Assembly (NCBI RefSeq): GCF_902652985.1
Contig: NC_047033.1
Location: 27,342,001 to 27,406,000 of the forward strand
Direction of reading: 5' to 3'
DNA length: 64,000 nucleotides
Source of the DNA: Pecten maximus
Taxonomy: Eukaryota
The notes under the pieces were generated by a model. That model did no database searches, was not told the DNA's origin, and saw nothing but the letters and a program-made list of their open reading frames with translations. Shown piece by piece: positions 118-46,773 of this stretch. How positions within the stretch are numbered: the first letter of the stretch is position 1; each line of letters opens with the position of its first letter. A program made the translations under genes and the position numbers.

Positions 118-240
118 GTGCCTCTTTGTGTACATCGGGAAGAATTGCTGTCACATCTCGACAGGATTCCTTCCTACTGCCAGCAGCTTCAGGCCACGCT
201 AAAGTCTCCTACGTATGGAAAGTCAGCCACATTTAACAAG
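118..240 (+). CDS. CTNNAL1: alpha-catulin (vinculin/alpha-catenin family), internal coding exon; gene continues upstream of the window
   Basis: Acceptor ttacag|GTG, donor AAG|gtacga; 123 nt encoding VPLCVHREELLSHLDRIPSYCQQLQATLKSPTYGKSATFNK, resembling the invertebrate alpha-catulin C-terminal domain. Confidence 0.85.
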
Positions 241-556
241 GTACGAATGTTAGCCTCATTTAACAAGGTACGAAAGTCAGCCACATTTAACAGGGTACGA
301 ATGTTAGCCTCATTTAACAAGGTACGAAAGTCAGCCACATTTAACAAGGTACGAATGTTAGCCACATTTAACAAGGTACGAAAGTCAGCCACATTTAACA
401 AGGTACGAATGTTAGCCACATTTAACAATGTATGAAAGTCAGCCACATTTAACAAGGTACGAATGTTAGCCACATTTAACAAGGTACGAAAGTCAGCCAC
501 ATTTAACAAGGTACGAAAGTCCGCAACATTTAACAAGGTATGAAAGTCAACCACTT
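213..556 (+). repeat. 27-bp tandem array (about 12 copies) containing the alpha-catulin splice donor
   Basis: Unit gtacgaaagtcagccacatttaacaag. Confidence 0.95.
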
Positions 557-591
557 AAAAACTGTCCCAATGTCACCATATGTATGCGGTA

Positions 592-1422
592 TGAAAGTCG
601 GCCAGTTAACGAGATATCAAAGTCGGCCAGATAACGAGATACCAAAGTCGGCCAGTTAACGTGATATCAAAGTCGGCCAGTTAACGAGATATCAAAGTCG
701 GCCAGTTAACGAGGTATCAAAGTCGGCCAGATAACGAGATACCAAAGTCGGCCAGTTGACAAGATATCAAAGTCGGTCAGTTAACGAGATACCAAAGTCG
801 GCCAGTTAATGAGATATCAAAGTCGGCCAGTTAACATGATATCAAAGTCGGCCAGTTAATGAGATACCAAAGTCGGCCAGTTAACATGATATCAAAGTCG
901 GCCAGTTAATGAGATATCAAAGCTTACCAGTTAACGAGATATCAAAGCTTACCAGTTAACGAGATATCAAAGTAGGCCGGTTAACGAGATTTCAAAGACG
1001 GCCAGTTAACGAGATATCAAAGTCGGCCAGTTAACGTGATAGCAAAGTCGGCCAGTTAATGAGATACTAAAGTCGACCAGTTAACGAGATATCAAAGTCG
1101 GCCAGTTAACGAGATATTAAAGTTGGTCAGTTAACGAGATATCAAAGTCGGCCAGTTAACGAGATATCAAAGTCGGCCAGTTAACGAGATATCAAAGTCA
1201 GCCAGTTAACGAGATATCAAAGTTGGCCAATTAACCAAATATCAAAGTCAGCCAGTTAACAAGATATTAAAGTCGCCCAGTTAACAAGATATCAAAGTCG
1301 GCCAGTTAACAAGATATCAAAGTCGGCCAGTTAACAAGATTCTAAAGTCGGCCAGTTAACGAGATATCAAAGTCGGCCAGTTAACCAAATATCAAAGTCA
1401 GCCAGTTAACGAGATATCAAAG
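592..1422 (+). repeat. 25-bp tandem array (about 33 copies) related to the 27-bp donor array
   Basis: Unit aaagtcggccagttaacgagatatc. Confidence 0.95.
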
Positions 1423-1533
1423 TTAGTTCACTAGAATTTGTCTTTTTCATGTCTCCTTACTCTGAGTATTAATGACTTTGTCTTTTTCATGACTCGTACT
1501 CATTCTGCGTATTCACAACTTTCTGTTTAATAG

Positions 1534-1617
1534 GTGGACAGTGCTATACAGGAGACGAAAAACTTGATGAATGCCATCGCAAAGGTTGTCACCACCAGTT
1601 TCATCTGTGCTACTAAG
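1534..1617 (+). CDS. CTNNAL1: alpha-catulin penultimate coding exon
   Basis: Acceptor tttaatag|GTG, donor AAG|gtaaga; encodes VDSAIQETKNLMNAIAKVVTTSFICATK (IQETKNLMNA motif typical of alpha-catenin/catulin); phase 0/0. Confidence 0.88.
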
Positions 1618-2197
1618 GTAAGAAAACCCATTGGATCTTAACTCCAGGGGAATGATCCTTAAGTCGACAGATATGAGGCTTGCTGAGTGTTTGGCAGCTC
1701 AAGTATCTTTGGGAAAGCTTCTAAGTCCAAAAGTATACACCTTACACCCTCCTAATTTGGTTTATACATTTATTAGAGGTCCAGGAGGGATGTTATGGCA
1801 AAATCATCAAGAAAATATTTTTTTTTTCTTTTCGTATTTTAACATTTTGTGGACTTAACTTTTTTAGCACCAAAATCCACTTTAAAGATTTTTGGGGCAA
1901 GTTTTGGAAAGCTTGCGAGTCCACACCCTTCTTATTTAGTTTATACATCCATTAGAAGTCTAGGAGCGATATTATGTGACGTACAATTTCAAAATGACAT
2001 GCTTATACATACATAAAAAAATAATGCATAGTGTGATTACTGCCACTGGTGAGTTTTCGCAATCATTGATTGCACTTGTTAAAACTTCTACTGGCTTATA
2101 AAGGATATGTAGATAACAGAACATGCCATAATTTAACTTGTAGATTTGATATGTTATCAAGTTTACTTAAATTGTATACTTCATATTTCTATTGCAG

Positions 2198-2380
2198 TAC
2201 AACATTGACTATCGTCGCTCACCAGGGGGCAGTAGAAGATGGCGTAGCCAGTCGTCGGCTGATGCACGTTCCAACAGCTCTGACAATGAGTCGGTGTATA
2301 GCAGCTCAGCTGATGGGATGCAGCGGAGTTCATCATCAAGTCGACAGTTCTCCAGCAATAATAGCCTCGACAGAGCATGA
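2198..2380 (+). CDS. CTNNAL1: alpha-catulin last coding exon (Ser-rich tail, stop TGA)
   Basis: Acceptor tttctattgcag|TAC in phase 0; YNIDYRRSPGG...LDRA*. Confidence 0.75.
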   Translation, partial: YNIDYRRSPGGSRRWRSQSSADARSNSSDNESVYSSSADGMQRSSSSSRQFSSNNSLDRA

Positions 2381-2739
2381 CTGGAGGCGGGGCTAGAATG
2401 AGTCTGCTGGGGTCAAAAGGTCAACGACTGCTGATGTCATCAATTCATCAAATATTGACTGCTGACTCTCAAATGAAAGAATGTGATTGATTTAGAGCAT
2501 GTTTTGTCAATATTTAGATTTAGGGGTCAATAACTGGGTCAAGAAGGTCAGTACCATAAACTGACCATGAAGGCTGTGAGGTTAAGTTCTGTCGGCCAGG
2601 AGACTGACATCCCGAGACAAGGTCATACATGATTATTATACTTTTTGTCAAGGTCAGATGAGATTGGATAAGAAAAAGCATGATCATAAAATGTTTAATA
2701 CAGGTTATGTTACTTGGATTACTACCCATTCACAGGGGA

Positions 2740-3540
2740 CAGCTAGAGTTATTCCCCTTTTACAGATGAGCGACTAGAGTTATTCCCCTTTTACAGATGG
2801 GAGAGTTATACAAGAGGAAGGGCTGGAAGGCTGAAGTTATTGCTCTTTTGCAGGAGAGAAACTGGTGTCATTCCCTTGTTCAAAGGTTAAAGTTACATAG
2901 AATAATGTTACCAATTTACAGAAGAATGACTAGAGTTATTCCCCTTTTACAGATGTGAGAGTTATATATGAGGAATGCTGGATTTATTGCTTGGAAGGCT
3001 GGATTTATTGCTCTTTTACAGGAGAGAAACTGGTGTCATTCCTTTGTTTAAAGGTTAAAGTTAATATAGAATAATATTACCAATTAACACGGGGCATTTT
3101 CAGTAATTTCCCTCTTACAGAACAATAACGAGTTATTCCCCTTCTACAGATGAGCGAGTTGGTCTTTGTTTATGTGAGGAAAGCTGAAGTTATTTATCTT
3201 TTGAGAGGAGAAAAACCGGAGTCATTCCCTTCTTACAGGAGAGAGAAACTGAAATTATTCCTATTTATATGTACACTAGAGGACTAGAGTTCTCCTTTAC
3301 TTTGAAGGAGGCTGGAGTTACTCCCCTTTAACCTGAGGATGACTGCAGAGGCAGGAGTCACACCTCTTTTACAGGAGGGAGGCTGGAGTTACTCCCCTTT
3401 AACAAAAGGAAGACTGCAGAGGCAGGAGTCACACCTCTTTTACAGGAAGAAGGCTGGAGTTACTCCCCTTTAACGTTAAGGAAGATTTCAGTTATTTTCC
3501 TTTTGTACAAGGGGATTGGAATTACTCCCCTTTTCCATTT
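2740..3540. repeat. Degenerate short-period repeat in the probable alpha-catulin 3' UTR
   Basis: Recurrent ct(a/g)gagtta(t/c)tccccttt(t)acag core. Confidence 0.7.
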
Positions 3541-5764
3541 GAAAGCCACAAATTATTCCTATTTTGTATTAATGGACCCTAAGATGGTCCCCTTTTCCTA
3601 TCTGTGAAATATGGTGTGTTATTATTTTGTTTGAAAGGCTTGTGTTCACAATGATAGACGTCTATATTATTATATACATATTTTACATATTTTTTTGTTG
3701 TAATCTTGCCATTTTATTTACAAGGCGTATATATATTTTGTTGTTGTTGTTGTCATGATTTAGATCAGTAATTTTACCTGATAGGGTATGTGTTTGATTA
3801 TTATTTATTCCATTTTTATTATCGGAAAGACAGAACCTGCCTTTACAGGTAAAATATCATAGATACTACTTCGCTGACACTTGTATACACTGCCTCACAC
3901 AGCATCTACATAATGACACCCACAGTATAGAAATAGGTCTAATCAACAGCTTCCTCGGAAAAAAAAATGGTAAAAATGATCACTTTAAACCCTGAAGTTA
4001 TCCGATTCATAGAAAATATACAGGTGGAGTATGGTAGAAATTCTTCACGATCCAATTAAGTATTTATCCTCTTTAAATTTAAAAGATGATATATATTAAT
4101 ATTTAAAGCTCAGATTTTTGGAGAGTGATAATAGTATATGGTATGTAAATTTCTGTATTTCATGAAAATATTTAACAGTTTGTATTTTTTTTCAATTGAT
4201 CATCATCATCTTTGTCGGAGATGTAGCTTCTTTATCTGTGCAGATAAATCTTGTTATAATGCCACAGTTTTACATGAAGAATGTTGGCATTATAACAGGT
4301 TTCCTCATGTTGGTTCTGAATTTTTTTTTTTTAAATATTCCATAAACAATTCCACAATTAAAAACAATTATTTATTGAATTGTCCCTGCAAAATGACCGT
4401 GATCCATGTGTGTCACCGTAAGTGTCCTATAATCCTCTAAAATACTGTAACAGATTTATATAGTGCCACTCACAATGTTTTGGGTGTCATGTATTGTCCT
4501 ACAACCTACTGACTTCTCGCTCAGAAAAAACCCAGGTCTGATATGGCCCGGGGCCCATAGATTTGATCTGTGGGTAAGTAAATATTGCTGACTACTTGCC
4601 CGATTGGCAAGTGCAAATTTCTCAATTTTTTACCTTTCCCCTAGATTAATTGAAGATACTACTAATTCAGTTTGATTGGTCCACCATGTTTCACGTTTGG
4701 GTAAGTACTTTTGAATCCTAACTTGCCCGAAGGACCAGTTATGCTGATTTTTTTCTTCCTTCACTTTAATTGTCAGTTCTCTCACTGCCGAAATATTTCC
4801 TAGACCCCTTTTCTTTGGAGCACTTGTGCATCTATCTTCAGTTTTACTCAGTTCAATCCAAATATTCTACCACAGGCTCAAGAATGGTTATGTTTTTCAT
4901 AATCCGATTTATTAAAATGTTTGTACATTTCCTTATAGTATTCCCATTTTTTGTGATTGACACGATTTTAATGTTTAGTTTCGTGGTCATCATCATTACA
5001 CTAAGAAACTTGAAACAAGTTTTGACCAGTTTGTACACAAATCAGTGTATACACCAATCCAACGGACATTTCAGTAAATAATTGGGTTTTTCTTTGATAT
5101 CTTGGTATACAGTTTAATCTAAAGCCAAAGAATTTCATCAATTTCCCCATAAATGAGATTTTGATGTTGGAAGCAATGTCTAACAGTTTATAAACCCAAA
5201 ATATCTTATAGTACAATTCTTAATACATGAATCCTTTTTTTACGCAGATTAGGAGTGGAGTTGTCTTTTCGTTCTCTAGTATGTTTAATTTGATGTAGTA
5301 TTTTTATCCATGGTTGAAGTATAGATCTCGGTTACTGAGAAAGATAAAACGTATTATTAGATGTTTACTGTGATAGTTATTTTAATTATATATTGTATTT
5401 TAATAGTATATGGCTTTCAAGTGAAAGATAATTGATGTTGAAATGTTCAAAACATGTATTGCTACTTACAGTAGAGGTTGGTTGTCAAGTGTGATAATGT
5501 GGCCCGTTTGACCTCAGACTAATGGTGTTATTAACGATGAATTTTAACCTTTTACTAATGTGTGCAATCATTTTAGATGACAGCTTTGTTGCCTGATGAT
5601 AGATATTTATATCCTGCAATCGTAAAGGCCACCATTGTTGGCTTCTAAAACTTCTAAAAGGTAGTTATAATGTTAATGCTTGTCATTTGTGAGTGGCAGG
5701 TTTTCTTGACACTCAAGTTGATAGTACATCTCAAGTTTATAAAACATATAGGTAATGGACATAT

Positions 5765-6460
5765 TATAATGAGACACTTGGGCGTAAGTCAAGACATGAG
5801 GGTATATCATAAGACAATTGGATATTGGTTATGATAGACACTTGGGTACAGTTATAAGACATGTTGGTACATAAGACACTTGGGTACATTTTTAAGACAT
5901 GTAGGTATATGATAAGACTCTTGGGTACAGTTATAAGACATGTGGGTACATAAGACACTTGAGTACAGTTATAAGACATGTGGGTATATGATAAGACACT
6001 TGGGTACAGTTACACAAGACATGTGGGTATATGATTAGACACTTGGGTACAGTTATAAGACATATAGGTATATGATAAGACACTTGGGTACAGTTATAAG
6101 ACATGTTGGTATATGATAGACACTTGGGTACAGTTATAAGACATATTGGTATATTATAAGACATATTGGTATATTATAAGACACTTGGGTACAGTTATAA
6201 GACATGTTGGTATATGATAGACACTTGGGTACAGTTATAAGATAGTTGGTATATGATAAGACACTTGGGTACAGTTATAAGACATGTTGGTATATTATAA
6301 GACACTTGGGTACAGTTATAAGATAGTTGGTATATGATATACACTTGGGTACAGTTATAAGACATATTGGTATATGATAAGACACTTGGGTACAGTTATA
6401 AGACATGTTGGTATATGATAGACACTTGGGTACAGTTATAAGACATGTAGGTATATGAAA
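5765..6460. repeat. About 40-bp minisatellite
   Basis: Unit gacacttgggtacagttataagacatgttggtatatgataa. Confidence 0.9.
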
Positions 6461-6562
6461 AATCACTATTTCAGATACTTTGTAAAGTTAAGAGAATTGA
6501 ATATAATTAAGTTTAAGATGCCTCATTAATTATTGAGATAATTTTTTTGAATTGAGTAAAAG

Positions 6563-6825
6563 GAATGGAGAATTCAGTAAAATTGCCAGGATAATTAAGC
6601 AATAGAGAATTCAGTAAAATTGCCAGGATAATTAAGCAATAGAGAATTCAGTAAAATTCCCAAGGTAATTAAACAATGGAGAATTCAGTAATATTCCCAA
6701 GGTAATTAAACATTGGAGAATTCAGTAAAATGGAGAATTCAGTACAATTGCCAAGGTAATGAAACAATGGAGACTTCGGTAAAATTGCCAAGGTAATTAA
6801 ACAATGGAGAATTCAGTAAAATTGT
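6563..6825. repeat. About 37-bp minisatellite
   Basis: Unit aatggagaattcagtaaaattgccaaggtaattaaac. Confidence 0.85.
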
Positions 6826-7639
6826 TATATATCTAGTATGTAGACAAAAATTTGCAATGTTACCTGTTTTCCTGTATGGTTTAGACTGGTGATATTCTTT
6901 GTTATTTTCCTCCCCAGTTGTCTCCCTTGTCTGGCTCCTCATTCACAATTTTTTACAAGTCTTACCGCTGTGGGTTTTGGTATGTACCATGGTATAGTGT
7001 TCACACAGTTATAGGTATTTGTTATATGATATCTTGCAATTCCAGAGAATTTTAAGATCTCGTACATATATAACGTTATCGTTTACATAGGACAAGATCT
7101 CCAAGAAGATTACACACTAAAATTTCATCATAGGGGATATCTCTGAAATGATTTCTGAATAATGAAACTTTGTACAATTTTTCTTAAATCTACATTGGAA
7201 ACTTTTTAACTTTCAGCTTTAGATTTATTAAATGACAAACCAACCATGTCAATTCACAATGTTGTAACATTCTAATGTATCTTATTTCCAGACATTCAAT
7301 TTAATTTTTTTAATCAGAGAATGGACAGTTTTCAGTAATGAAGAACTACAAACACAAAATATTGCACAAAGTTTCTCTTTTTGTTTAATTTCACAACATA
7401 CTTGTATTCACTTTGAAGAATTTCATCATCTTTTCATCATTTCGTGTTTTTTTTTTTGTGCTGTGTAGTTTAAACATTCCGATGGCTAGGTCTTCAGGGT
7501 CCTCAGTATAGTCCTCAAATCAAACTGAAATTATATATTGTGTATAATATATATTTAAATATTACTTTTTTAGGATAAATTTTAGAAGTTATATTATAAG
7601 TGTTTAAGGTGATGATATTATACAGGAAATAGAGACTTT

Positions 7640-8130
7640 ATTGATGAAATACATGTATATTGTACATCATATATTGTACATCATATAATTGAGAATTATT
7701 GATGAAATACATTATTGTACATCATATATTGTACATCATATAATTGAGAATTATTAATGAAATACATTTATATTGTACATCATATAATTGAGAATTATTG
7801 ATGAAATACATTATTGTACATCATATAATTGAGAATTATTAATGAAATACATGTATATTGTACATCATATAATTGAGAATTATTGATGGAATACATTATT
7901 GTACATCATATAATTGAGAATTATTGATGAAATACATTATTGTACATCATATAATTCAGAATTATTAATGAAATACATGTATATTGTACATCATATAATT
8001 GAGAATTATTGATGGAATACATGTATATTGTACATCATATAATTGAGAATTATTAATGGAATACATGTATATTGTACATCATGTAATTGAGAATTATTGA
8101 TGGAATACATGTATATTGTACATCATGTAT
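7640..8130. repeat. AT-rich minisatellite of about 40-44 bp
   Basis: Unit attgatgaaatacatgtatattgtacatcatataattgagaatt. Confidence 0.9.
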
Positions 8131-8496
8131 ATGATTTTATGAGCAGAGAGTGTATCGGAATATTTACTTGGAATGTAGTGATATCTCCCAAGATTGAAGA
8201 AAAGGTTGGAGAACCTTCACATAACGACGTATGTTAAAGAATTTGTATGTACGACTTAAACAAGACGATATTTAATAAGATTTTTTGTTTCATTATTCAA
8301 AACATACCCAGGTATATTTTTTTCTTCAATATATCCGATGTAAGACTTTTTTTAGTTCTAGTTACCTCCCTTTGTACTGTCTATTGTGTCCTATCCAACA
8401 TCTACAATTAGTTCACTATATCATTTTAGAAGCAACCCCATCCTCAAAATTTATATAATATTTTAAGTTTTAAGTTTCCCCAACCTGAGAAAGTTG

Positions 8497-8559
8497 TAGT
8501 CTCGCACGCCCCAGACTTTTGTTAGAGGCGGTCTCGAGTGTCTGGGGAATGCGAGACTA
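8497..8559. mobile_element. Tiny inverted-repeat element (MITE-like hairpin)
   Basis: tagtctcgca..ccccagac ... gtctgggg..tgcgagacta. Confidence 0.55.
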
Positions 8560-10810: not shown

Positions 10811-10844
10811 TTGTGTGGTAGTTCTCAGTCGACATGTCAGATAA

Positions 10845-25536: not shown

Positions 25537-25890
25537 AACTTACAACATACTCAAACACAAATACAATTATACTTACAACATACTCCAACACAAATAAAAT
25601 CACACTTACAACATACTCCAACACAAATACAATTATACTTACAACATACTCAAACACAAATACAATTATACTTACAACATACTCAAACACAAATACAATT
25701 ATACTTACAACATACTCAAACACAAATACAATTATACTTACAACATACTCAAACACAAATACAATTATACTTACAACATACTCAAACACAAATACAATTA
25801 TACTTACAACATACTCAAACACAAATACAATTATACTTACAACATACTCAAACACAAATACAATTATACTTACAACATACTCAAACACAA
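25537..25890 (-). repeat. 33-bp array (11 copies) containing the exon 8 donor
   Basis: Minus-strand unit TTTGTGTTTGAGTATGTT|gtaagtataattgta. Confidence 0.95.
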
Positions 25891-25968
25891 AAGTTAGCGT
25901 TTCCTTGGTGTGTATGATGTCATGAAGTGTGACAATGTTAGCGTGTTTTAGACCCTTCAGAAGTGAGG
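25874..25968 (-). CDS. CDK14: CDK14 exon 8 ([32 protein letters not shown])
   Basis: Acceptor tttttcag|, donor GTT|gtaagt. Confidence 0.95.
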
Positions 25969-26239
25969 CTGAAAAATAAACAGAGAAATTATTAATCTCT
26001 GGAAATTTAACTATTTATCTTGGTCACAGGAATATAGGATTATTACATAACAATAAACACAGGTAGACAATTGTAACCTATATAGGTAAATCAATCTCAC
26101 TAGTTGCATCAGTTATAGGTTTTTAAAACCAAATCGAACGGAGGCAGCCATTTTGTTACGTCATCATCATTTCAAGACCAAAGGTCCTTGTCAATATTAT
26201 GATGTCACAACAGACTTCTGACTGAGATAGCCAATCAAA

Positions 26240-27655
26240 ACACTCCAGGGTATATTACACTCCGGGGTATATTACAGTCCAGGGTATATTACACTCTGGG
26301 GTATATTACACTCCGGGGTATATTACACTCTGGGGTATATTACACTCCAGGGTATATTACACTCCAGGGTATATTACACTCCAGGGTATATTACACTCCA
26401 GGGTATATTACACTTCGGGGTATATTACACTCCGGGGTATATTACACTCCGGGGTATATTACACTCCAGGGTATATTACACTCCGGGGTATATTACACTC
26501 TGGGGTATATTACAGTCCGGAGTATATTACACTCCAGGGTATATTACACTCCAGGGTATATTACACTCCGGAGTATATTACACTCCGGGGTATATTACAG
26601 TCCGGGGTATATTACCGTCCGGGGTATATTACACTCCGGGGTATATTACACTCTGGGGTATATTACACTCCGGGGTATATTACAATCCGGGGTATATTAC
26701 ACTCCAGGGTATATTATACTCCAGGGTATATTACAGACCGGGGTATATTACACTCCGGGGTATATTACACTCCGGGGTATATTACACTCCAGGGTATATT
26801 ACAGACCGGGGTATATTACACTCCGGGGTATATTACACTCCGGGGTATATTACACTCCAGGGTATATTACAATCCGGGGTATATTACACTCCAGGGTATA
26901 TTACACTCCAGGGTATATTACAGACCGGGGTATATTACACTCCAGGGTATATTACACTCCGGGGTATATTACACTCCGGGGTATATTACAGTCCGGGGTA
27001 TATTACACTCCAGGGTATATTACACTCCGGGGTATACTACACTTCAGGGTATATTACAGACCGGGGTATATGACACTCCGGGGTATATTACACTCTGGGG
27101 TATATTACACTCCGGGGTAAACTACACTCCGGGGTATATTACACTCCAGGGTATATTATAGTCCGGAGTATATTACACTCCGGGGTATATTACACTCTGG
27201 GGTATATTACACTCCGGGGTATATTACACTCCAGAGTTTATTACACTCCGGGGTATATTACACTCTGGGGTATATTACACTCCGGGGTATACTACACTCC
27301 GGGGTATATTACACTCCAGGGTATATTATAGTCCGGAGTATATTACACTCCGGGGTATATTACACTCTGGGGTATATTACACTCCGGGGTATATTACACT
27401 CCAGAGTTTATTACACTCCGGGGTATATTACACTCTGGGGTATATTACACTCCGGGGTATACTACACTCCGGGGTATATTACACTCCAGGGTATATTATA
27501 GTCCGGAGTATATTACACTCTGGGGTATATTACACTCCGGGGTATATTACACTCTGGGGTATATTACACTCCGGGGTATATTACACTCCAGGGTATATTA
27601 CACTATGGGGTATATTACACTACGGGGTATATTACACAACAGGGTATATTACACC
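26240..27655. repeat. 17-bp minisatellite (about 80 copies)
   Basis: Unit tatattacactccgggg. Confidence 0.95.
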
Positions 27656-27707: not shown

Positions 27708-27787
27708 CTTCTCTGATAGCAGTAAACGGTGCTCCCTCCTCAGCCTGTAACCGGATTTCCTTCAGAGCAACGATCTGATTGGTTAAA
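27708..27787 (-). CDS. CDK14: CDK14 exon 7 (LTNQIVALKEIRLQAEEGAPFTAIRE)
   Basis: Acceptor tgtttcag|, donor AAG|gtaaag; diagnostic PFTAIRE helix. Confidence 0.97.
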
Positions 27788-27844
27788 CTGAAACATAAGT
27801 ATTTCAACTCATTAGAATAACAATTATCACTCCTACAGATATGA

Positions 27845-28800
27845 TATACATACCTGTATGACATACACCATACACCATACACAACTGTATGACCAGTATG
27901 CACCTGTATTATAAACATGCCTGTATGACAAACACACCTGTATGACAAACACACCTGTATGACAAACACACCTGTATGAATTACATGCCTGTATGACATC
28001 TACACCTGTATGACATCCACACCTGTGTGACATCCACACCTGTGTGACATCCACACCTGTATGACATTCACATCTGTATGAATTACATGCCTGTATGACA
28101 TTCACACCTGTATGACATCCACATCTGTATGACATCCACACCTGTGTGACATCCACACCTGTGTGACATCCACACCTGTGTGACATATACACACCTGTAT
28201 GACATCCACACCTGTGTTACATCCACACCTGTATGACATCCACACCTGTATGAATTACATGCCTGTATGACATACACATCTGTATGACATTCACACCTGT
28301 ATGGCATACACACCTATATGACATCCACACCTGTATGACATTCAAACCTGTATGACATACACACCTGTGTGACATCCACACCTGTATGACATCCACACCT
28401 GTGTTACATCCACACCTGTATGACATCCACACCTGTGTTACATCCACACCTGTATGACATTCAAACCTGTATGACATACACACCTGTATGACATACACAC
28501 CTGTGTGACATCCACACCTGTATGACATCCACACCTGTGTTACATCCACACCTGTATGACATCCACACCTGTATGAATTACATGCCTGTATGACATACAC
28601 ATCTGTATGACATTCACAGCTGTATGGCATACACACCTGTATGACATTCACACCTGTGTGACATCCACACCTGTATGACATTCACACCTGTATGACATTC
28701 ACACCTGTATGACATACACACCTGTATGACATTCACACCTGTATGACATACAAACCTGTATGACATGCAAACCTGTATGACATACATGCCTGTATAGACA
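27845..28800. repeat. 17-bp minisatellite
   Basis: Unit cacacctgtatgacatc. Confidence 0.95.
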
Positions 28801-29509
28801 CTTCTGACGTTTGGGGGGATTTAGCTCTTGAAATGCTTTATCAATACATCTTATGATCCTGACAAGATAAATGAAGAATGCTACTACAGAAAGTTGGACG
28901 GTGAAGGACAAGATCTCAGAAGTGTGTCAGCATTCATAACTTTTGATTCCCTTTGGCTCTGTATCCTGCTGTCTAAATTAATGGTTCTGTAATTTGGTTG
29001 AATATAACATTGATGTGAAATCAAATCAGCTGCTTGGGCTCCATCCTTTCCTACTTCAGGAGAGACACCATTTGTACAAATGTATTAATTTTGATTTCCA
29101 TACTCAAAACATGCTGCCACATAAGGTTGATATATCTGCTTTGTACTTTTGTACGTTGTTTAATGCAAAAGTTGATGGATGACAGCTAGCTAGAAGAGGC
29201 ACTACACCATTTAATACATGACATAATAGAAGAGGCTCTACACCATTTAATACATGACATGACAGAAGAGGCTCCACACCATTTAATACATGACATGACA
29301 GAAGAGGCACTACACCATTTAATACATGACTTATCTCCTTAACCAGTGAGAAACTTTGTTTCTTTTTTTTCTTTTTTTTTCTCGACACGGTTTTCCCTGC
29401 CGTTTTCATGATAGTGAAAAAATATACTGGTAAACAGTGCAATGAACATATTGTCTCGCTGTGAAATCAACCATTAACAAATATAGACATAATTGGTGAA
29501 TATTTCATT

Positions 29510-29639
29510 ATCACAGCTCTCTATCCATGGCTACATATCTAATACACTTACCAACTAAACCCTTTGTAGACAGTATCACAGCTCTCTATCAATGGCTACA
29601 TATCTAATACACTTACCAACTAAACCCTTTGTAGACAGT
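29510..29639 (-). repeat. 65-bp direct duplication spanning the exon 6 donor
   Basis: ACTGTCTACAAAGGGTTTAGTTG|gtaagtgtattag occurs twice (GT at 29616 and 29551). Confidence 0.92.
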
Positions 29640-31528: not shown

Positions 31529-31692
31529 TCCGTAACTAGATGTTCGTTTCGGAGAGAACTGTCGTAGATATGTATGACCCTCAGACTTAGGTCGTTCATG
31601 TTTTTCATTATCAGGCGGTGAGTCAAGATCAAATGTTCCGTCAAGCATATCCCCAGCTGAATGATGCCGCTTTACTGGAGCATGGTTCTTAT
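31529..31692 (-). CDS. CDK14: CDK14 exon 5 (NKNHAPVKRHHSAGD...KRTSSYG)
   Basis: Acceptor tttttgacag|, donor GGA|gtatgt; phase 1/0. Confidence 0.8.
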
Positions 31693-33213
31693 CTGTCAAA
31701 AACAAATCATGGTTCTTATCTGTAAAGAACAACACATCATGGTTCTTATCTGTCAAAAACAACGGATCATGGTTCTTATCTGTCAAAAACAACAAAGCAT
31801 GATTCTTATCTGTCAAAAACAACAGATCATGGTTCTTTGTCAAAAACAACAGAGCATGGTTCTTATCTGTCAAAAACAACAGATCATGGTTCTTATCTGT
31901 CAAAAACAACAGAGCATGGTTCTTATCTGTCAAAAACAACAGAGCATGGTTCTTATCTGTCAAAAACAACAAAGCATGGTTCTTATCAGTCAAAAATAAT
32001 GGATCATGGTTCTTATCTGTCAAAAACAACAGATCATGGTTCTTATCTGTCAAAAACAACAGAGCATGGTTCTTATCTGTCAAGAACAACAGATCATGGT
32101 TCTTATCTGTCAAAAACAACAGAGCATGGTTCTTATCTGTCAAAAACAACAAAGCATGGTTCTTATCAGTCAAAAATAATGGATCATGGTTCTTATCTGT
32201 CAAAAACAACAGATCATGGTTCTTATCTGTCAAAAACAACAGAGCATGGTTCTTATCTGTCAAGAACAACAGATCATGGTTCTTATCTGTCAAAAACAAC
32301 AGAGCATGGTTCTTATCTGTCAAAAACAACAAAGCATGGTTCTAATCAGTCAAAAATAATGGATCATGGTTCTTATCTGTCAAAAACAACAGATCATGGT
32401 TCTTATCTGTCAAAAACAACAGAGCATGGTTCTTATCTGTCAAGAACAACAGATCATGGTTCTTTGTCAAAAACAACAGATCATGGTTCTTATCTGTCAA
32501 AAACAACAGATCATGGTTCTTATCTGTCAAAAACAACAGAGCATGGTTCTTATCTGTTAAAAACAACAGAGCATGGTTCTTATCTGTCAAAAACAACACA
32601 ACATATTGGTTCTTATCTCTCAAAAACATCAGAGCATGTTTCAGAGCATGTTTTTATTTGTCAAAAACAGAGTTTTTATGTTTTTTTATCAGCAAAAAAC
32701 AACACAACAAGCTTATGGTACTTATTTGCCAAAAACAAAGAATGGCACTTATCTGTCGATAATAGCAGATCATTGCTCTTACCTATCAAAAACAACAGAT
32801 CAACGTTCTTATCTCTTAAAAACAACAGATCATGGTTCTTATCTGTCAAAAACAACAGATCATGGTTCTTATCTGTCAAAAACAACAAATCATGGTTCTT
32901 ATCTGTCAAAAATAATAGATCATGGTTCTTATCTGTCAAAAACAACAAATCATGGTTCTTATCTGTCAAAAACAACACATCATGGTTCTTATCTGTCAAA
33001 AACAACAGAGCATGGTTCTTATCTGTCAAAAACAACAGATCATGGTTCTTATCTGTCAAAAACAACAGATCATGGTTCTTATCTGTCAAAAACAACAGAT
33101 CATGGTTCTTATCTGTCAAAAACAACAGATCATGGTTCTTATCTCTCAAAAACAACAGATCATGGTTCTTATCTCTCAAAAACAACAGATCATGGTTCTT
33201 GTCTCTCAAAAAC
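31679..33213 (-). repeat. 30-bp array (about 50 copies) containing the exon 5 acceptor; fills almost all of intron 4
   Basis: Minus-strand unit tgttgtttttgacag|ATAAGAACCATGATC. Confidence 0.95.
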
Positions 33214-38432: not shown

Positions 38433-39187
38433 CAATCAATGAAGGTGAGGTTTTGATAACCTTTGTTACAAGCTGGAGATGACATTATTTTTAGTCTCCA
38501 TCAAGAATAGACTTATAAATTAAACTACTGTGAAGGCATCACAGCATACTTATGATATATACTAATATTTGAAGGGACATATATATATTTGCTATGGCAG
38601 ATTTGATTTCCAAAACTAACACTATCAGAACTTTAGTTCAGTAAACAGGAGGATCACATTCCATGATCACACAGATTCAGTTTGTAGAAGAAAATTGGTC
38701 TACAGTGCTTGAATTTTAATTCTATTTCATGATAATGTTTATGTTGACTTTTGAAAATTTCAGGTTGAAAACAAAAAGGAGTATTCTGCTCCTGGAAACT
38801 AACAATTGCCTGCACCATTTTCAATTTAATTTTCAATTCCAACCTTTATCTTCCCAACTTCGTACATAAGTATAGAGCTACATACCATATTCAACATAGT
38901 CTAAAAAAAGAATGAGAGCCATGATGATATAATGCATTTAATTGGTGGGACTGAAATCTAAATACTGGTTACAAAGGTTTCCCTATTATACAGGTTCTGG
39001 TTTATAGACAGAGGCTACACTATGTAGCTGGAAGGAAAACTTCAACACAAAGTCAGAACTGAAGTTTGTTCTCTGGAAGCTTGAGGGATAAAACAGCTGT
39101 AGTATTATAGTAGACCGTAAACCCTGACATGTATAAGCACTTAACTTTCCCTCCAGTCTGCCAGGAAATGTTCAAAACCACACTAAG

Positions 39188-39766
39188 ACAAGAGGCTTGC
39201 AGGGCCTGAATCATCTCCAGTAGATCTCAAAAACAAACTAAATCAAGAGGTTTATAGGGCCTGGATTATCTCCAGTAGATCTCAAAAACAAACTAAATCA
39301 AGAGGTTTATAGGGCCTGGATTATCTCCAGTAGATCTCAAAAACAAACTAAATCAAGAGGTATATAGGGCCTGGATCATCTCCAGTAGATCTCAAAAACA
39401 AACTAAATCAAGAGGTATATAGGGCCTGGATCATCTCCAGTAGATCTCAAAAACAAACTAAATCAAGAGGTATATAGGGCCTGGATCATCTCCAGTAGAT
39501 CTCAAAAACAAACTAAATCAAGAGGTATATAGGGCCTGGATCATCTCCAGTAGATCTCAAAAACAAACTAAATCAAGAGGTGTATAGGGCCTGGATCATC
39601 TCCAGTAAATCTCAAAAACAAACTAAATCAAGAGGTATACAGGGCCTGGATCATCTCCAGTAGATCTCAAAAACAAACTAAATCAAGAGGTATATAGGGC
39701 CTGGATCATCTCCAGTAGATCTCAAAAACAAACTAAATCAAGAGGTATATAGAGCCTGGATCATCA
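39188..39766. repeat. 55-bp minisatellite (about 10 copies)
   Basis: Unit caagaggtatatagggcctggatcatctccagtagatctcaaaaacaaactaaat. Confidence 0.95.
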
Positions 39767-40703
39767 CAGTGGTAATGCCCAATCTGCCAGAAAAGGGTAA
39801 GAATTACGTTGAAGTAATAACATACACATCCCACAAGTCACATGACATAGACGTCGACATTCAATGATAGTCAAACTGACATCCCATAATAGTCACACAC
39901 AGCCCGAACTAGCCATACAACCCACATCCCATAATAGTAAAACTGACATCCCATAACAGTCACAGTTGAAAAGTGAGCGACCCATCCAAAACTAGTCATA
40001 TAACACATCCCATAATAGTCAAACTGACATCCCATATTAGACACACCCACATCTCAAACTAGTCATAAAACACACTCATCGCATAATAGTCATATAACAC
40101 ACATCCCATAATAGTTATAAACTGACATCCCAAAATTGGCAAACTAACATCCCATAATAGTCAAACTCATTTTAACTGATATTCCATAAAAGTCAAACTG
40201 ATATCCCATAATAGTTAAACTGACATCCAGTAATTTAGTCAAATTGATATCCAGAACATTTACAATATAGCAAAAGAAAATTCTCGTGAATCACAATAAA
40301 GATCAGTCAACACATTTGTAGTTATGAACCCTAAGAGGTCTCATCCAGTCCACAGTCAGCTAGATGTACTATTTCAGCACCAAGCCAATCTTTAATGAAA
40401 TGACAGCACTATAACTATTCCAGTTCCAATCACAACTGTATGTATTCCAGGCATGATTCGATCCTCCTCTCTGATCCCAGCTGTCTCAAAACAAACCCAA
40501 CAACCTCCCCTCCACACACTTAACACAGTTTTCTGTCTTCATTTGATCTATTTAGTGTCATTTTTCTCCATCTGCCATTATTCTTTAATCATACTACAAG
40601 TCCCCATATAACCTTGCCAGTTGTACTAATATGTACGTTGACCATAAAATATGATATATATGTCCTAGAAATGACCTTGATATGTGACATCCTTAGAGAG
40701 TAT

Positions 40704-41202
40704 GTTGACCTATATTCTTGTAGTTCTATAAAGCTGACCTATATCCTTGTAGTTCTATAAAGTTGACCTACATCCTTGTAGTTCTATAAAGCTTACCTAT
40801 ATCCTTGTAGTTCTATAAAGTTGACCTATATCCTTGTAGTTCTATAAAGTTGACCTATATCCTTGTAGTTCTATAAAGCTTACCTATATCCTTGTAGTTC
40901 TATAAAGCTGACATATATCCTTTAGTTCTATAAAGTTGACCTATATCCTTGTAGTTCTATAAAGTTGACCTACATCCTTGTAGTTCTATAAAGTTGACCT
41001 ATATCCTTGTAGTTCTATAAATTTGACCTACATCCTTGTAGTTCTATAAACTTGACCTACATCCTTTCATGTCTATAAATTTGGCCTATATCCTTGTAGT
41101 TCTATAAATTTGACCTACATCCTTGTAGTTCTATAAAATTGACCATACATCGATATCCTTGTAGTTCTATATAGCTGGCCTACATTGTTGTAGTTCTATA
41201 AA
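40704..41202. repeat. 29-bp minisatellite
   Basis: Unit gacctatatccttgtagttctataaagtt. Confidence 0.9.
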
Positions 41203-41709
41203 GGTCTACACTTGACTGAGAGCTCTAGATCTATATAACTGGCCTGCATCCTTTACAACAATGTGAGGTTGGCTACTTTCCTAGTCAGCACCTCAGACTT
41301 GGCCCTCCAATCACTTATACATTCACACACACAATGCTGACAAATTGATATCATGGAACTTTGACAGAGGTAAGTACAGCTGAACTGACTAAATCGCTGA
41401 ATATTCAGATCAAAGCCATTTCTTGGGAACGATACTACCTATGTATTAACTGTGTTGGTGAAACATACACACTTGTGGATATATATAATAGATGCTATCA
41501 ATCATCAAATACAGACAAAACATTCATACCGATTTTAACTTCAAACCTATACTTACTTTCGAAACATTAATTTTTTTTTACTTTTTCCAGATTGATGTAC
41601 AACTCGGCTATAATTTGAAAAGAACCTCATTTTGGCAGACGCAACATTACATCTAGACAGAACAAGGATCTCACATAATGGATTTTATCTTATTTCAATT
41701 TACTGATCA

Positions 41710-41974
41710 AACAAGCATGCTGGGTATTGCTATATAGCAAATACAAGTCCCCTACCCGCCCCTGCTAAAAATAGAAACAGAGACCTTGACCCAAAAACCC
41801 TGCAACTCGAACTTGATCTGTATCTACTCATACTGAAGTTACATACCAACTTTCATCTTGAAGCATGACTGAGAAAAGTGTGGAAAACTGAGTGGACGGA
41901 CGGACAGACAAATGGATGCACAGACGGACAGGGAGGAAACCTATAGTCTCCCAGTTTCACCAGTAGGGGACTAT
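41710..41974 (+). mobile_element. Short Helentron-associated (HINE/DINE-like) non-autonomous element
   Basis: acaag start, subterminal IR agtcccctac/gtaggggact, (ggac/agac)n microsatellite, terminal hairpin. Confidence 0.65.
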
Positions 41975-42097
41975 AGTCATGCAGAGGATGGTAACACAAT
42001 GAGATTGGTCAGAGTTCACATCTCTATTAATAGGTCAATCACATCTCTATTAAAACATCAATCACATTTCTATTAAAAGGTCAATCACATCTCTATT

Positions 42098-43143
42098 ACA
42101 AGAGGCCCAAAGGGCCTTAACGGTCACCTGAGATTTGAAATATTTCGGCCAACTAAATTGACCCTTTTTGGCCCCACCCATCAGTCCTAATGAGGTCAGT
42201 CTATGAAGAGTATTTGATTCTAACATATAGTAGATAAGAAGATTTTTGAAATTTCAGTCAATTTGACCCTTTTTGGCCCCGCCAATCAGCCCCTGGGGGT
42301 CAACCAGGGCCAACATGTACATAACATCAAACTGTAATCCCATGCTGATAATTTGAACCAAGTTAGAATGAATTCCAATACAAATCCAACAAATAATAGT
42401 CAAAAATGTGATTTCCCTATATAAACTATAGTAAAGTTTACCCCCTCCCCAGGGGCAAACGTGAGACCCCAGGGTCATGAAATTCACAATTTTGGTAAAG
42501 CACCTGAAGACCCTTCCATCTATGAAGAGTATTTGATTCTACCATATCTGAGAGTAGGGAAGAAGATTTTTGAAATTTTAGTCAATTTGACCCTTTTTGG
42601 CCCCGTCCACCAGCCCCTGGGGGTCAACTAGGGCCAACATGTACATACCATCAAACTGTCATCCCATGCTGATAATTTGAACCAAGTTAGAATGAATTCC
42701 GATACAAATCCAACAAATAATAGTCAAAAATGTGATTTCCCTATATAAACTATAGTAAAGTTTACCCCCTCCCCAGGGGCAAACGTGAGACCCCAGGGTC
42801 ATGCAATTCACAATTTTGGTAAAGCACCACAAGACCCTTTCATCTATAAAGAGTGTTTGACTCCACCATATCTGAGAGTAGAGAAGAAGATTTTTGAAGT
42901 TTTAGTCAATTTGACCCTTTTTGGCCCCACCCCTCAGGCCCCTGGGGGGTGGGGACCATATAATTCACAATTTTGGTTGACCTTCAGCCATAGAAACTTT
43001 CTGCCAAATTTCACTGAATTTTGTTAAGCGGTTTTGGAGAAGAAGTCGAAAATGTAAAAAGTTTACGGACGCACGACGGACGACGACGGACAAAAGGCGA
43101 TTAGAATAGGTCACTTGAGACTTCGTCTCAGGTGACCTAAAAA
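42098..43143 (+). mobile_element. HINE/DINE-like element carrying internal 324-bp tandem repeats
   Basis: acaagaggcccaaagggcc start, IR ggtcacctgag/ctcaggtgacc, (gacg)n microsatellite, terminal stem-loop before an A-run. Confidence 0.8.
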
Positions 43144-45369
43144 GGTCAATCACATCTATATAAAAAAAAAGTCAAACATTGTATCAAATCTGATTATTTT
43201 CAGGTCAATGTCAATTCTATTATATGATAAACCCTCCTAATACAAACACATCACCATGAAAAGCAACCAGTATTAAAATCTTTAACACACTTCCAGCCAA
43301 AATGAATTATTGTAAACCGGAGCCTTCTCAAAGGCATTTAAAACAAGTATTTCAGCATTTGTTCAATTAGATAATCTCAGCTGGCTACATCATCAAAATT
43401 TAATATTCTGGTACGGGCGGCTTTAACTGTCACACCTCCCTATATTCATACAGACTACATACTGGGTCATGTACTCTCCAGATTCACTGTTAAACCTGGT
43501 AATGTAATCAAGAGGCTGATGGGGCCTGTATTTCCCAGAACACCAATCAACACAAGCTATTTTAAGGCAATCACTGCATGAGAAATGAGAATTCTGGCAG
43601 CTGAGGAGGAAATTGTTTCCCGATCATTATTGGTATGCCAGTTTTCCTTCGTCTCCCAGACACAATTCAAATCATCAAATTTTTCCCAAGAGAACCAAAT
43701 CTCATCTGAGCTAAAATGATAAAATATCGTGATCAATAATTCCATTGATTAAAATATAGCCAGATAAATCATTGAGGGCCAGGAAATCAAAGAAAATGTT
43801 CACTGTAGACATTGCTGATTATTGAAATCTGACCTGCAGAATTAGAACACATGATATAGGGCAAACAAAAGAACAAGAGCTACACATATTTATAATGTCT
43901 CCTGTGTCCCTGCTTAATCAAAGCCCGGTTAATGGTAAACTGTAGGGCATATTCAGACTCTGAAATGTGTGTTAGGATGGCCATGCATATATAAGTATAT
44001 TCTAAATTCGGTTATGACTGCACATTGAACTTATGGAGAATTAAGCTCAAATCCCAGGATCTTTATCTTCTCTAATTAATTAACAACGATCAAATAACAG
44101 TTAATTGAAGGGGATATTCAGACTCTGAAATGTGTGTTAGAATGGTTGTATATATCAGAAACAATTAGTCTATTCCAGATTTGTGCATGAATGACAGCAC
44201 ATACTTAGAAAAATTAAGCTCAAATCCCAGCTAATTGGAAAACTTTAATATTGTGCAATTGACAAAGTCCGATTATAATCTATAACCCTGTCCCCCATCT
44301 GGTACGGAATCAGGGGTTACATGCATAATTAAACCCACCACTCACCTTAACATTGATAATGACAACCACTTTTTACAGAATGTTAATTAATCCATGGAAT
44401 AAACTTGTGGATTTTGCAGAGTTTTACCACAATCCAGGATCTTAATCATGATGACTGTTTGGTTATTATATATTGTTTCTAATGTGAAGAATACATTTCA
44501 CCTTCTTCCATGCAATCACAAATGTTTACTGATCCATGATAATTGGTTAATTATAGCCTTTCATTTTTTTTTTTTTTATGAAATCCTTATCTCCATACGG
44601 AAGTATATTTTTGAACATATATCCTTGTTTTCTATGACAGACACATTAGCTATTGTATTATTCCAGATTTGTACTGTTTTTCTGGAAAGTTTCCCACCAG
44701 AATCTAACAAACTATGGGAGGCCCACGTGATAATCAGGACTTTTGACCCAGTGCATCTGAAGGCATTTGAGAGTTATATAAACAAAGACACACATGTTTC
44801 TGTGTGTAGATATTGGCCTTAGTGAGAGATCAGAACACATATGGAGGGGATGAGGAGACTGGGGGAGGGGGACGTAGAGGACTGGGGGAGGGGGACGAAG
44901 GGGACTGGGGGAAGGAGAAAGGCATGGGAGATTGGTACATTAAGGGTATGTCCCTTTGACATCCTGTGCCCTTTCAATGCATCTTTGCTCTTTTCTTTGT
45001 TATCCCTGTGAAAGACAAAAGAAGGGGGGGGGGGGGGGGGGGGGGGGGGGGTGGGTGGGTAAGGGAAATGATACTCAGTAGAAGGGGAAGTCAAAGAAAA
45101 GAAGAAAGAAAGAAGGAGAAACTGGTTTACATAGAAGGATGTTATTACAGTCACAAAGCAATGAAATGGGTAGGAAAGTTCAAAGAACAGAAGATGGAAA
45201 AATGGAAAGGAGTCTGATATTTGTAAATTAGGAAGTCAGGTAAATGAGGAAGGGGGGAGCTGCAGGGCCCCATGGGGACATTTTTGTATACATCAGACTA
45301 TGCATATACACAAAATAGTTGTAATCAATTTATGATGGTCACATAATTACGGTAGAAATCATGCTGGGT

Positions 45370-46730
45370 TTGAGGATACTTACACAGACGTCCAAAGCTG
45401 ACCGATATTGAGGATACTTACAGAGACGTCCAAAGCTGGTCTATATTGAGGATACTTACACAGACGTCCAAAGCTGGTCGATATTGAGGATACTTACAGA
45501 GACGTCCAAAGCTGGCCGATATTGAGGATACTTACACAGACGTCCAAAGCTGGCCGATATTGAGGATACTTACACAGACGTCCAAAGCTGGCCGATATTG
45601 AGGATACTTACACAGACGTCCAAAGCTGACCGATATTGAGGATACTTACAGAGACGTCCAAAGCTGGCCGATATTGAGGATACTTACAGACGTCCAAAGC
45701 TGACCGATATTGAGGATACTTACAGAGACGTCCAAAGCTGGCCGATATTGAGGAAACTTACAGACGTCCAAAGCTGGCCGATATTGAGGATACTTACAGA
45801 GACGTCCAAAGCTGGCCGATATTGAGGATACTTACAGACATGTCCAAAGCTGGCCGATATTGAGGATACTTACAGAGACGTCCAAAGCTGGCCGATATTG
45901 AGGATACTTACAGAGACGTCCAAAGCTGGTCGATATTGAGGATACTTACAGAGACGTCCAAAGCTGGCCGATATTGAGGATACTTACAGACACGTCCAAA
46001 GCTGGCCGATATTGAGGATACTTACAGAGACGTCCAAAGCTGGCCGATATTGAGGATACTTACAGACGTCCAAAGCTGGCTGATATTGAGGATACTTCCA
46101 GAGCGTCCAAAGCTGCCGATATTGAGGATACTTACAGAGACGTCCAAAGCTGGCCGATATTGAGGATACTTACAGACATGTCCAAAGCTGGCCGATATTG
46201 AGGATACTTACAGAGACGTCCAAAGCTGGCCGATATTGAGGATACTTACAGAGACGTCCAAAGCTGGTCGATATTGAGGATACTTACAGAGACGTCCAAA
46301 GCTGGCCGATATTGAGGATACTTACAGACACGTCCAAAGCTGGCCGATATTGAGGATACTTACAGAGACGTCCAAAGCTGGCCGATATTGAGGATACTTA
46401 CACAGACGTCCAAAGCTGGCTGATATTGAGGATACTTACAGAGACGTCCAAAGCTGACAGATACTGAGGATACTTACAGAGACGTCCAAAGCTGGCCGTA
46501 TTGAGGATACTTACACAGACGTCCAAAGCTGGCCGATATTGAGGATACTTACAGAGACGTCCAAAGCTGACCGATACTGAGGATACTTACAGAGACGTCC
46601 AAAGCTGGCCGATATTGAGGATACTTACACAGACGTCCAAAGCTGGCCGATATTGAGGATACTTACAGAGACGTCCAAAGCTGGTCGATATTGAGGATAC
46701 TTACAGAGACGTCCAAAGCTGGCCGATATT
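45370..46730 (-). repeat. 38-bp array (about 36 copies) containing the exon 2 donor
   Basis: Minus-strand unit ATATCGGCCAGCTTTGGACGTCTCT|gtaagtatcctca. Confidence 0.96.
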
Positions 46731-46773
46731 CGCTTCTTCAGCTTTTTCATGCGACTTTGTCGTTTGTCCTTTC
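46705..46773 (-). CDS. CDK14: CDK14 exon 2 (GKDKRQSRMKKLKKRISASFGRL)
   Basis: Acceptor attacag|, donor TCT|gtaagt; resembles the KLKKRLSHSFGRL N-terminal motif of Eip63E/PFTAIRE kinases. Confidence 0.85.

Follow-up and report, generated by a model that had tools for sequence, protein, structure and literature searches.

Minisatellite-like arrays whose unit lies across an intron-exon boundary have been described in amphioxus under the name of mirages, with units of 10 to ~160 bp at both 5' and 3' boundaries, in Adh3, troponin C, the globins BflGb6 and BflGb9, and PGBD5 (PMC3087553, PMC3902484). In these genes AG and GT are kept in most copies, splicing is normal, the copy at the boundary is spared homogenisation, and both length polymorphism and somatic instability have been shown (PMC3087553, PMC3902484). 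Human junction minisatellites are known from F7, IFI6, CBS, LMNB2, and PDGF (PMC3087553, PMC3902484, PMC1557585). In F7, the first monomer extends across the exon-intron boundary and is followed by identical pseudo-donors, of which none is spliced in place of the donor lying furthest upstream (PMC3087553, PMC1557585).

The arrays reported here from the scallop Pecten maximus resemble amphioxus mirages in having a boundary-spanning unit, in affecting both boundary types, in mostly keeping AG or GT, in leaving normal splicing intact, and in sparing the boundary copy from homogenisation. They differ in belonging to a mollusc and in being far denser, with 8 affected junctions in two adjacent genes, up to 51 copies, whole introns filled, and recurrence at other CDK14 junctions across four species. 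The human VNTRs (F7 IVS7, 37 bp; CBS, 31 bp; IFI6; LMNB2; PDGF), in contrast, concern donors only, with one isolated case per gene. The F7 unit holds 4 exon nucleotides versus 18-26 in the scallop donor arrays, and the F7 site choice is proven by mutagenesis, whereas the scallop choice comes from RNA contigs only. The original prediction knew of no description of such density; the kind of phenomenon, however, is already published as amphioxus mirages and human minisatellites, and the present case carries it beyond a few genes of amphioxus and human into a mollusc. According to the Rogers model, introns are reportedly gained through tandem duplication of an AGGT-containing segment. As in that model, duplication yields extra splice sites in the scallop, and arrays make up most of introns 4 and 14. 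However, all four scallops have the CDK14 introns at the same positions, so the arrays enlarge old introns and create none.

The window, i.e., the whole stretch of 64,000 nucleotides that was analysed, belongs to P. maximus chromosome 19 and carries CDK14 on its minus strand (17125-62471, 17 exons), from the first coding exon (62423-62471) to exon 17, which holds the stop (17125-17249). The gene model was obtained by tblastn of P0178 (XP_033728820.1, CDK14-like, Pecten maximus), whose pieces match at 87-100% identity. Exons were placed individually against database proteins and their lengths then added up, giving a total of 1563 nt, which equals 520 codons plus the stop. AG or GT is present at 32 of 32 CDK14 junctions, and exons 8-13 are backed by RNA contigs. 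Exons 3 and 4 were not located with distant orthologues, while P0178 placed both. Exon 2 (46705-46773; P0034 and P0178) and exon 5 (31529-31692; P0178) were found by tblastn, and exon 8 (25874-25968; 25874-25970 in the contigs) by RNA contigs from X6, X8, and X17, all three with AG/GT flanks; exons 10 (23964-24025) and 13 (21934-22027, or 21933-22026) are likewise delimited by RNA contigs. Another database protein, P0007 (18 matching stretches), is of low complexity and irrelevant to the locus. The plus strand contains a single exon (118-240), which we take, following the original prediction, to belong to a putative CTNNAL1-like gene; its acceptor (117/118), donor (240/241), open frame, and AG and GT flanks were read directly from the sequence.

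TRF reports 41 arrays that occupy 19,876 of the first 47,000 bases, or ~42% of the locus. In CDK14 and the CTNNAL1-like gene, eight splice sites (four donors and four acceptors) are copied in tandem into the neighbouring intron. At six of them, namely the CTNNAL1 donor, the donors of CDK14 exons 2, 6, and 8, and the acceptors of exons 5 and 13, the unit combines the splice site with 12-32 nt of genuine exon sequence. Copies per array were counted by junction k-mer.

Among the donors, the CTNNAL1 array (218-554, plus strand) has 12.5 copies of a 27-bp unit made of 23 nt of exon end and the intron start, according to TRF and the period profile, with GT in 12 of 12 junction copies. An adjacent plus-strand array (590-1423, 33 copies of 25 bp) derives by alignment from the same junction unit; GT has become GA in this distal sub-array, so the donor is lost. 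The CDK14 arrays all lie on the minus strand. At exon 2 (45370-46730), a 38-bp unit (26 nt of exon and 12 nt of intron, the latter starting GTAAGTAT) is repeated about 36 times; of 35 junction copies, 34 have GT and 20 are the same as the real site, and the exon end inside the array is homologous to orthologues. The exon 6 donor is a doublet (29509-29639) of 65 bp (23 nt of exon, 42 nt of intron). At exon 8 (25533-25891), 11 copies of a 33-bp unit (18 nt of exon, 15 nt of intron) are in frame and open, with GT in all 11.

As for the acceptors, the exon 5 array (31681-33213) consists of 51 copies of a 30-bp unit comprising a pyrimidine tract, AG, and 12 nt of exon; AG is found in 43 of 51 copies, and the array occupies 96% of intron 4. 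The exon 10 array (24024-24689; 40 bp, 16.6 copies) derives from the conserved end of intron 9. It reaches just 2 nt past the acceptor, which is thus repeated with hardly any exon sequence. The exon 13 duplication (21996-22153) has a period of 77 and two copies, a 57-nt copy (25 nt of intron and 32 nt of exon) being followed by a 20-nt spacer. The exon 15 array (18332-18672) is decayed, with 5 upstream copies of the acceptor and ~10 nt of exon at a spacing of 35-85 nt; a DNA pattern search gives 6 decayed matches versus 0.56 expected by chance, and the array forms most of intron 14.

These junction arrays had been predicted from the sequence, and TRF and k-mer counts return the same coordinates and copy numbers. 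The surplus copies lie on the intron side at all eight junctions, in line with the claim that they always run toward the intron, and the claimed mixture of ages is likewise seen, from 97% identical copies to the decayed ones at exon 15. Two further cases suggested for exons 14 and 3 do not hold in P. maximus, where the nearby arrays cover neither junction and begin 62 nt upstream of the exon 14 acceptor and 77 nt downstream of the exon 3 donor.

The authentic copy borders the exon, and the decoys appear to be silent. RNA contigs from three runs (X6, X8, and X17) splice the exon-proximal site at exon 8, where they end at 25874 within the first array copy, at exon 10, where they begin at 24025, and at exon 13, where the exon-proximal copy of the duplication is used. 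At the other junctions the same choice is presumed from the RefSeq protein alone, and contigs may miss rare decoy use. Nothing supports the earlier idea that the arrays tune splicing, the RNA contigs having exon-proximal sites only. In recursive splice sites, a pyrimidine tract and AG/GTAAGT are juxtaposed in long introns, with RNA intermediates. Such ratchet points were rejected for the window because each unit has a donor or an acceptor and never the two fused, while some of the genome-wide AGGTAAGT arrays read YAG/GTAAGT.

The arrays are seeded locally from the junctions. TRF finds the units in the window to be mutually unrelated, and the exon 5 unit, the one searched genome-wide, gives 21 exact copies at this locus and one further site (C19:29,018,440). 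A dispersed repeat, transposon, or satellite origin was rejected on these grounds, in agreement with the original prediction, which had argued against one transposon. Relatives without arrays have the exon portion of these units as conserved coding sequence. A donation of the exon 5 start by the array was also discarded, since the first 12 exon nucleotides are conserved in the array-less A. irradians and M. yessoensis. The CDK14 locus of the nemertean Tubulanus polymorphus (L002) has zero minisatellites, which shows that arrays are not inherent to the gene.

Arrays take up 37-44% of the CDK14 locus in all four scallop species and 88-97% of single introns. Comparison with related bivalves had been proposed at the outset, and the three other scallops do carry junction arrays in CDK14, partly at other junctions: at the exon 14 donor and exon 15 acceptor in A. 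irradians, at the exon 5 acceptor in Y. balloti, and at the exon 7, 8, and 14 donors in M. yessoensis. The exon 5 copy number is 51 in P. maximus versus 72 in Y. balloti, and the unit length at the same junction varies across species (33 and 51 bp at exon 8, 30 and 39 bp at exon 14). Most of the between-species difference in intron length is due to arrays; intron 4, for example, is 357 nt long where it has no array and 1.6-2.2 kb where it has.

Under uniform seeding, simulation of the whole window gives 1.48 expected overlaps, matching the earlier estimate of 1-2, versus 6-7 seen (P(>=7) = 2.5e-4). For CDK14 alone, 6 are seen versus 1.55 expected (p = 0.0034). The window was selected for this ~4-fold excess. 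Elsewhere in the genome, kinase and myosin loci provide 3 strict cases versus ~2.4 expected (110 exon ends), in a sample of 50 loci with which the genome-wide junction test is underpowered. CDK14 of the three other scallops has 6 cases versus 3.78 expected (85 junctions, p = 0.17), and the unselected data pooled amount to 9 junction arrays versus 6.2 expected. That unselected junctions are struck at roughly the uniform-seeding rate in both sets supports an explanation by density. A targeted process or selection had been proposed; the underlying excess is real in the window, but it is nearly gone in the unselected data.

The arrays are mirage minisatellites, and we consider it likely that they arise from ordinary minisatellite formation combined with a heavy intron load. 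Short boundary-spanning segments would be tandemly duplicated by the ordinary minisatellite processes of the genome, presumably slippage or unequal exchange, and the resulting junction arrays would then expand, homogenise, and decay like the ~35 other arrays in the locus. Splicing would keep the exon-continuous copy, i.e., the donor furthest upstream or the acceptor furthest downstream, leaving the remaining copies as silent intronic decoys. Scallop introns bear an extreme minisatellite load, with a probability of ~5-6% per junction of sitting in an array seed; many junctions would thus be struck, and the window would represent the upper tail. Such arrays would need no function, their visible effect being introns inflated several-fold. 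Strong 5' splice sites may in addition be moderately favoured. Counting against density alone are the 6-7 overlaps in the window versus 1.5, the donor-triplet excess, and the 18-26 nt clustering.

The last two observations bear on another explanation, in which tandem duplication is linked to the 5' splice site and strong donors, real or cryptic, are mutational hot spots. Its candidate routes are U1- or spliceosome-associated pausing, R-loops, and RNA-templated repair, with one breakpoint ~20 nt upstream. We regard it as conceivable but doubtful. According to genome-wide counts, AGGTAAGT triplets spaced 8-38 nt number 9,708 versus 938, 2,817, and 2,103 for three control words matched to it in composition, although single-word counts are level (59,377 for the donor word versus 58,024 for a control). 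Perfect donor consensus words are 3-10 times commoner in tandem triplets than control words, four of which were compared, and a donor bias is possible from this excess. In terms of distinct loci, AGGTAAGT has 10 in 7.3 Mb, where controls give 14 in 100.5 Mb and 4 in 12.9 Mb, and the tandem donor words AGGTAAGT and AGGTGAGT correspond to roughly 1,000 loci. As in real donors, position -3 is A or C in 14 of the 17 listed donor-word arrays. In 8 of 9 donor arrays that cover a junction, the repeat begins with the last 18-26 nt of the exon, and all four such arrays of the relatives fall within this range, which was set in P. maximus. Random seeding does not predict this edge, and the different unit lengths with which exons 8 and 14 were struck across species also favour a donor link. 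However, unselected junctions have no overall excess, and GGTRAGT occurs in only 2 of 258 arrays versus ~2 expected from base composition (control words 0 and 4). Triplets of the acceptor word TTTTCAGG are not enriched (277 versus 457 for a control), and donor-like words show no clear excess of density in the array seeds of the sampled loci. Moreover, the control words numbered just four to six and array word content is over-dispersed, while the regularities are post hoc and some cases are possibly orthologous and not independent. It is rather unlikely, in our view, that the scallop germ line has a donor-associated duplication with a breakpoint ~18-26 nt upstream, which would have produced about a thousand donor arrays genome-wide and struck the same junctions repeatedly across species.

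An adaptive role would make the arrays tuners of splicing efficiency, sites of U1 recruitment protecting long introns, landing pads for recursive splicing, or in-frame optional peptide inserts. The 27, 30, and 33 bp units of three large arrays, at the CTNNAL1 donor, exon 5, and exon 8, are indeed in frame and stop-free and would, were decoys used, add inserts of 9-11 residues, but by our own calculation the frame of a 30-bp unit is open by chance with a probability of ~0.6, and units of 38, 65, 77, and 40 bp would shift it. The resemblance of many genome-wide donor-word arrays to recursive splice sites and the retention of the exon 5 array by P. maximus and Y. balloti alike fit such a role, whereas the canonical junctions found alone in RNA contigs, the gain and loss of arrays at differing junctions between species, the missing GT of the distal CTNNAL1 sub-array, and the decaying exon 15 copies make it improbable. 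That the arrays stem from the PacBio CLR assembly, as an artefact or through erroneous collapse or expansion, is very hard to believe. Long-read assemblies are prone to errors in tandem arrays, and the copy numbers may not be exact; however, independent short-read DNA contigs (X4) cross the boundary between exon 10 and its array as well as the distal end of the exon 8 array with no differences, exon ends agree with RNA contigs, and comparable arrays exist in independent assemblies of three other species.

Mirages are common enough in this mollusc for statistical study; extrapolated roughly from the few percent of junctions affected, thousands of cases are expected in the genome. The four scallop genomes make array births, sharing, and decay visible at defined junctions of one gene. 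As natural experiments in splice-site choice, the arrays offer as many as 50 identical decoy acceptors or 35 decoy donors, and for gene predictors they form a pitfall. Should both the excess of donor words and the 18-26 nt boundary rule hold genome-wide, they would give a first handle on array birth, whose mechanism the published papers call unclear. As a side observation, a distance of 18-26 nt is reminiscent of an exon-junction-complex or spliceosome footprint.

According to TRF, 42% of the first 47 kb of the window consists of 41 tandem arrays, and at six junctions the repeat unit combines genuine exon sequence with the splice site. Donors of this kind are found at CTNNAL1 on the plus strand (218-554, 27 bp × 12, 23 exon nt) and, on the minus strand, at CDK14 coding exons E2 (45370-46730, 38 bp × 35-36, 26 exon nt), E6 (29509-29639, a 65 bp × 2 doublet, 23 exon nt), and E8 (25533-25891, 33 bp × 11, 18 exon nt). 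The minus-strand acceptors are those of E5 (31681-33213, 30 bp × 51, 12 exon nt) and E13 (a duplication of period 77 × 2, 32 exon nt). The E10 array (40 bp × 16.6) ends 2 nt within the exon, and 5 decayed copies of the acceptor plus ~10 exon nt lie upstream of exon 15, whose acceptor pattern gives 6 matches vs 0.56 expected by chance. Most decoys, i.e., additional intronic copies of the splice site, retain GT or AG, and copies identical to the real site number 20 of 35 at E2 and 30 of 51 at E5. Thus, the arrays described in the original prediction are real and accurately reported according to TRF, junction counts, and RNA contigs, and TRF and junction copy counts confirm its 8 cases with their unit sizes and coordinates; its possible extra CDK14 cases, exons 3 and 14, are unsupported. 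Adjoining the CTNNAL1 donor array is a 25 bp × 33 array (590-1423) derived from the same junction unit with GT changed to GA, so that the distal two thirds of the CTNNAL1 decoys contain no donor. CDK14 exon 7 (27708-27787) has unrelated 17-bp arrays on either side, 52-53 nt off, with 83 and 56 copies (26240-27654 and 27840-28800, respectively).

The window lies at C19:27,342,001-27,406,000 of the searched Pecten maximus assembly (918,306,378 bp, 3,983 contigs). CDK14-type kinases were retrieved by a protein search with the translation of exon 12, and a second search recovered XP_033728820.1, "cyclin-dependent kinase 14-like [Pecten maximus]", which matches the minus strand with 87-100% identity per piece. 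Exon-by-exon mapping of this protein gives 17 coding exons from 62,471 to 17,125, all with AG/GT flanks; the exons were mapped singly, and adding up the individual lengths gives 1,563 nt. RNA contigs from 3 runs join exons 8 to 13 exactly where predicted. The neighboring plus-strand CTNNAL1-like exon (118-240) is placed from sequence.

As for the origin of the units, their exon parts are conserved coding sequence in the scallop CDK14 comparison: array-less scallops have the same 12 nt at the start of exon 5 and the same final 18-26 nt in exons 2, 8, and 14, so the junction seeded the array, not the array the junction. In a genome-wide search the E5 unit pattern occurs at the CDK14 locus and at one site 1.65 Mb away, and nowhere else. 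A 32 bp × 13 array at L052:1074-1500, an extracted locus (C19:29,018,2xx-29,018,6xx), ends exactly at a myosin exon acceptor and has ~20 of 30 positions in common with the E5 acceptor unit, including an 8-nt word after AG. Regarding which copy is used, RNA contigs give the exon-proximal one at E8, E10, and E13, and at the remaining CDK14 junctions the basis is the RefSeq protein only. Decoy use would shift the CDK14 frame at E2, E6, E10, and E13, and would insert in-frame, stop-free units at E5, E8, and the CTNNAL1 donor.

In amphioxus, tandem repeats across exon-intron boundaries go by the name "mirages" (Adh3, TnC, globins, and PGBD5); splicing there is undisturbed and their origin is called unclear (PMC3087553, PMC3902484). 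Human F7, IFI6, CBS, LMNB2, and PDGF provide one example each, and F7 is spliced solely from the donor lying furthest upstream (PMC1557585). Neither a genome-wide test nor a report from molluscs turned up in our literature search on junction-spanning repeats. The scallop CDK14/CTNNAL1 arrays represent a very dense instance of this known kind of structure.

To compute chance expectation, each array was collapsed to one unit (seed) and seeds were placed uniformly, excluding those entirely within exons. At 31 junctions, TRF shows 7 overlaps vs 1.48 expected in simulation (P = 2.5e-4), and CDK14 alone has 6 vs 1.55 (P = 0.0034). Since the window had been chosen for its excess, unselected loci were examined. 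Among 50 P. maximus loci surrounding exon matches to Pkinase and Myosin_head elsewhere in the genome (~296 kb, 110 exon-match ends), 3 strict cases (L003, an acceptor, 54 bp × 9; L022, a donor; L046, a donor, by eye) compare with ~2.4 predicted from ~2.2% seed coverage; 3 more arrays (L052, L027, and L050) end at or close to AG. In the CDK14 loci of Argopecten irradians, Ylistrum balloti, and Mizuhopecten yessoensis, with AG/GT confirmed at all junctions, 2, 1, and 3 junctions are covered vs 1.31, 1.44, and 1.03 expected, respectively (pooled 6 vs 3.78, P = 0.17). Both sets being near expectation, array density accounts for most of the phenomenon. The main explanation is thus an exceptional minisatellite load of scallop introns, through which junctions would be caught within arrays, together with exon-proximal site choice, through which such arrays may be tolerated.

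Arrays make up 37-44% of the CDK14 locus in all 4 scallop species, with individual introns reaching 88-97% and array-free introns spanning 280-1,700 nt, mostly <700. Introns with 75-97% minisatellite include 3, 4, 7, and 9 of the window, 14 of A. irradians (L053), 4 of Y. balloti (L055), and 7 of M. yessoensis (L056). Where an orthologous CDK14 intron lacks arrays, it is shorter several-fold: the array-free intron 4 of A. irradians measures 357 nt, compared with 1,576 nt for P. maximus and 2,230 nt for Y. balloti. Array turnover thus drives intron-length differences among scallops. The CDK14-like locus of the nemertean Tubulanus polymorphus (GCA_964204645.2) spans 8.8 kb and contains no minisatellites, indicating a scallop rather than a CDK14 trait. 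The published king scallop repeat table reports 0.99% simple repeats and 16.7% "unclassified" (PMC7191990), whereas arrays with units ≥10 bp cover 15% of a 200 kb genic sample and 42% of the window locus; minisatellites therefore seem under-reported for this genome.

Besides density, a donor-linked mutational bias is possible. The exon part measures 18-26 nt in 8 of 9 donor arrays covering a junction (units of 27-84 bp), a regularity spotted post hoc: 26, 23, 18, and 23 nt for E2, CTNNAL1, E8, and E6 of P. maximus, 23 nt for A. irradians E14 (from L053:41538), and 18, 19, and 20 nt for M. yessoensis E7, E8, and E14 (from L056:10804, 12002, and 23282). The exception is the L022 donor array (6-9 nt), and 3 more donor arrays start ≤3 nt from the junction. 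This position upstream of the donor resembles that of the exon-junction complex. E8 and E14 donors have arrays in 2 species each, with different unit lengths and the same exon-side edge, which could reflect recurrence, or inheritance followed by indels.

Tandem triplets (3 copies of one word spaced 8-38 nt) were also counted across the whole genome. AGGTAAGT forms 9,708 triplets vs 938 for the reversed word, while both are equally common as single words (59,377 vs 58,024); swapping GT to TG yields a control word with 2,817 triplets, and that word reversed has 2,103. For AGGTGAGT the counts are 5,952 vs 2,205. No triplet enrichment is found genome-wide for the acceptor word TTTTCAGG. Among the rows listed, distinct loci number 10 in 7.33 Mb for AGGTAAGT and 7 in 8.74 Mb for AGGTGAGT, vs 14 in 100.5 Mb and 4 in 12.87 Mb for control words. 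GGTRAGT occurs in 2 of 258 collected arrays, both at true donors, and control words in 0 and 4. Because control words are few and counts over-dispersed, the donor-word excess is suggestive. Perfect donor words are 3-10 times commoner in triplets than reversed or GT-swapped controls, with ~1,000 loci by extrapolation. The listed donor-word units are all distinct, with A or C at position -3 in 14 of 17; many are YAG/GTAAGT, and C follows the word in 7 of 10.
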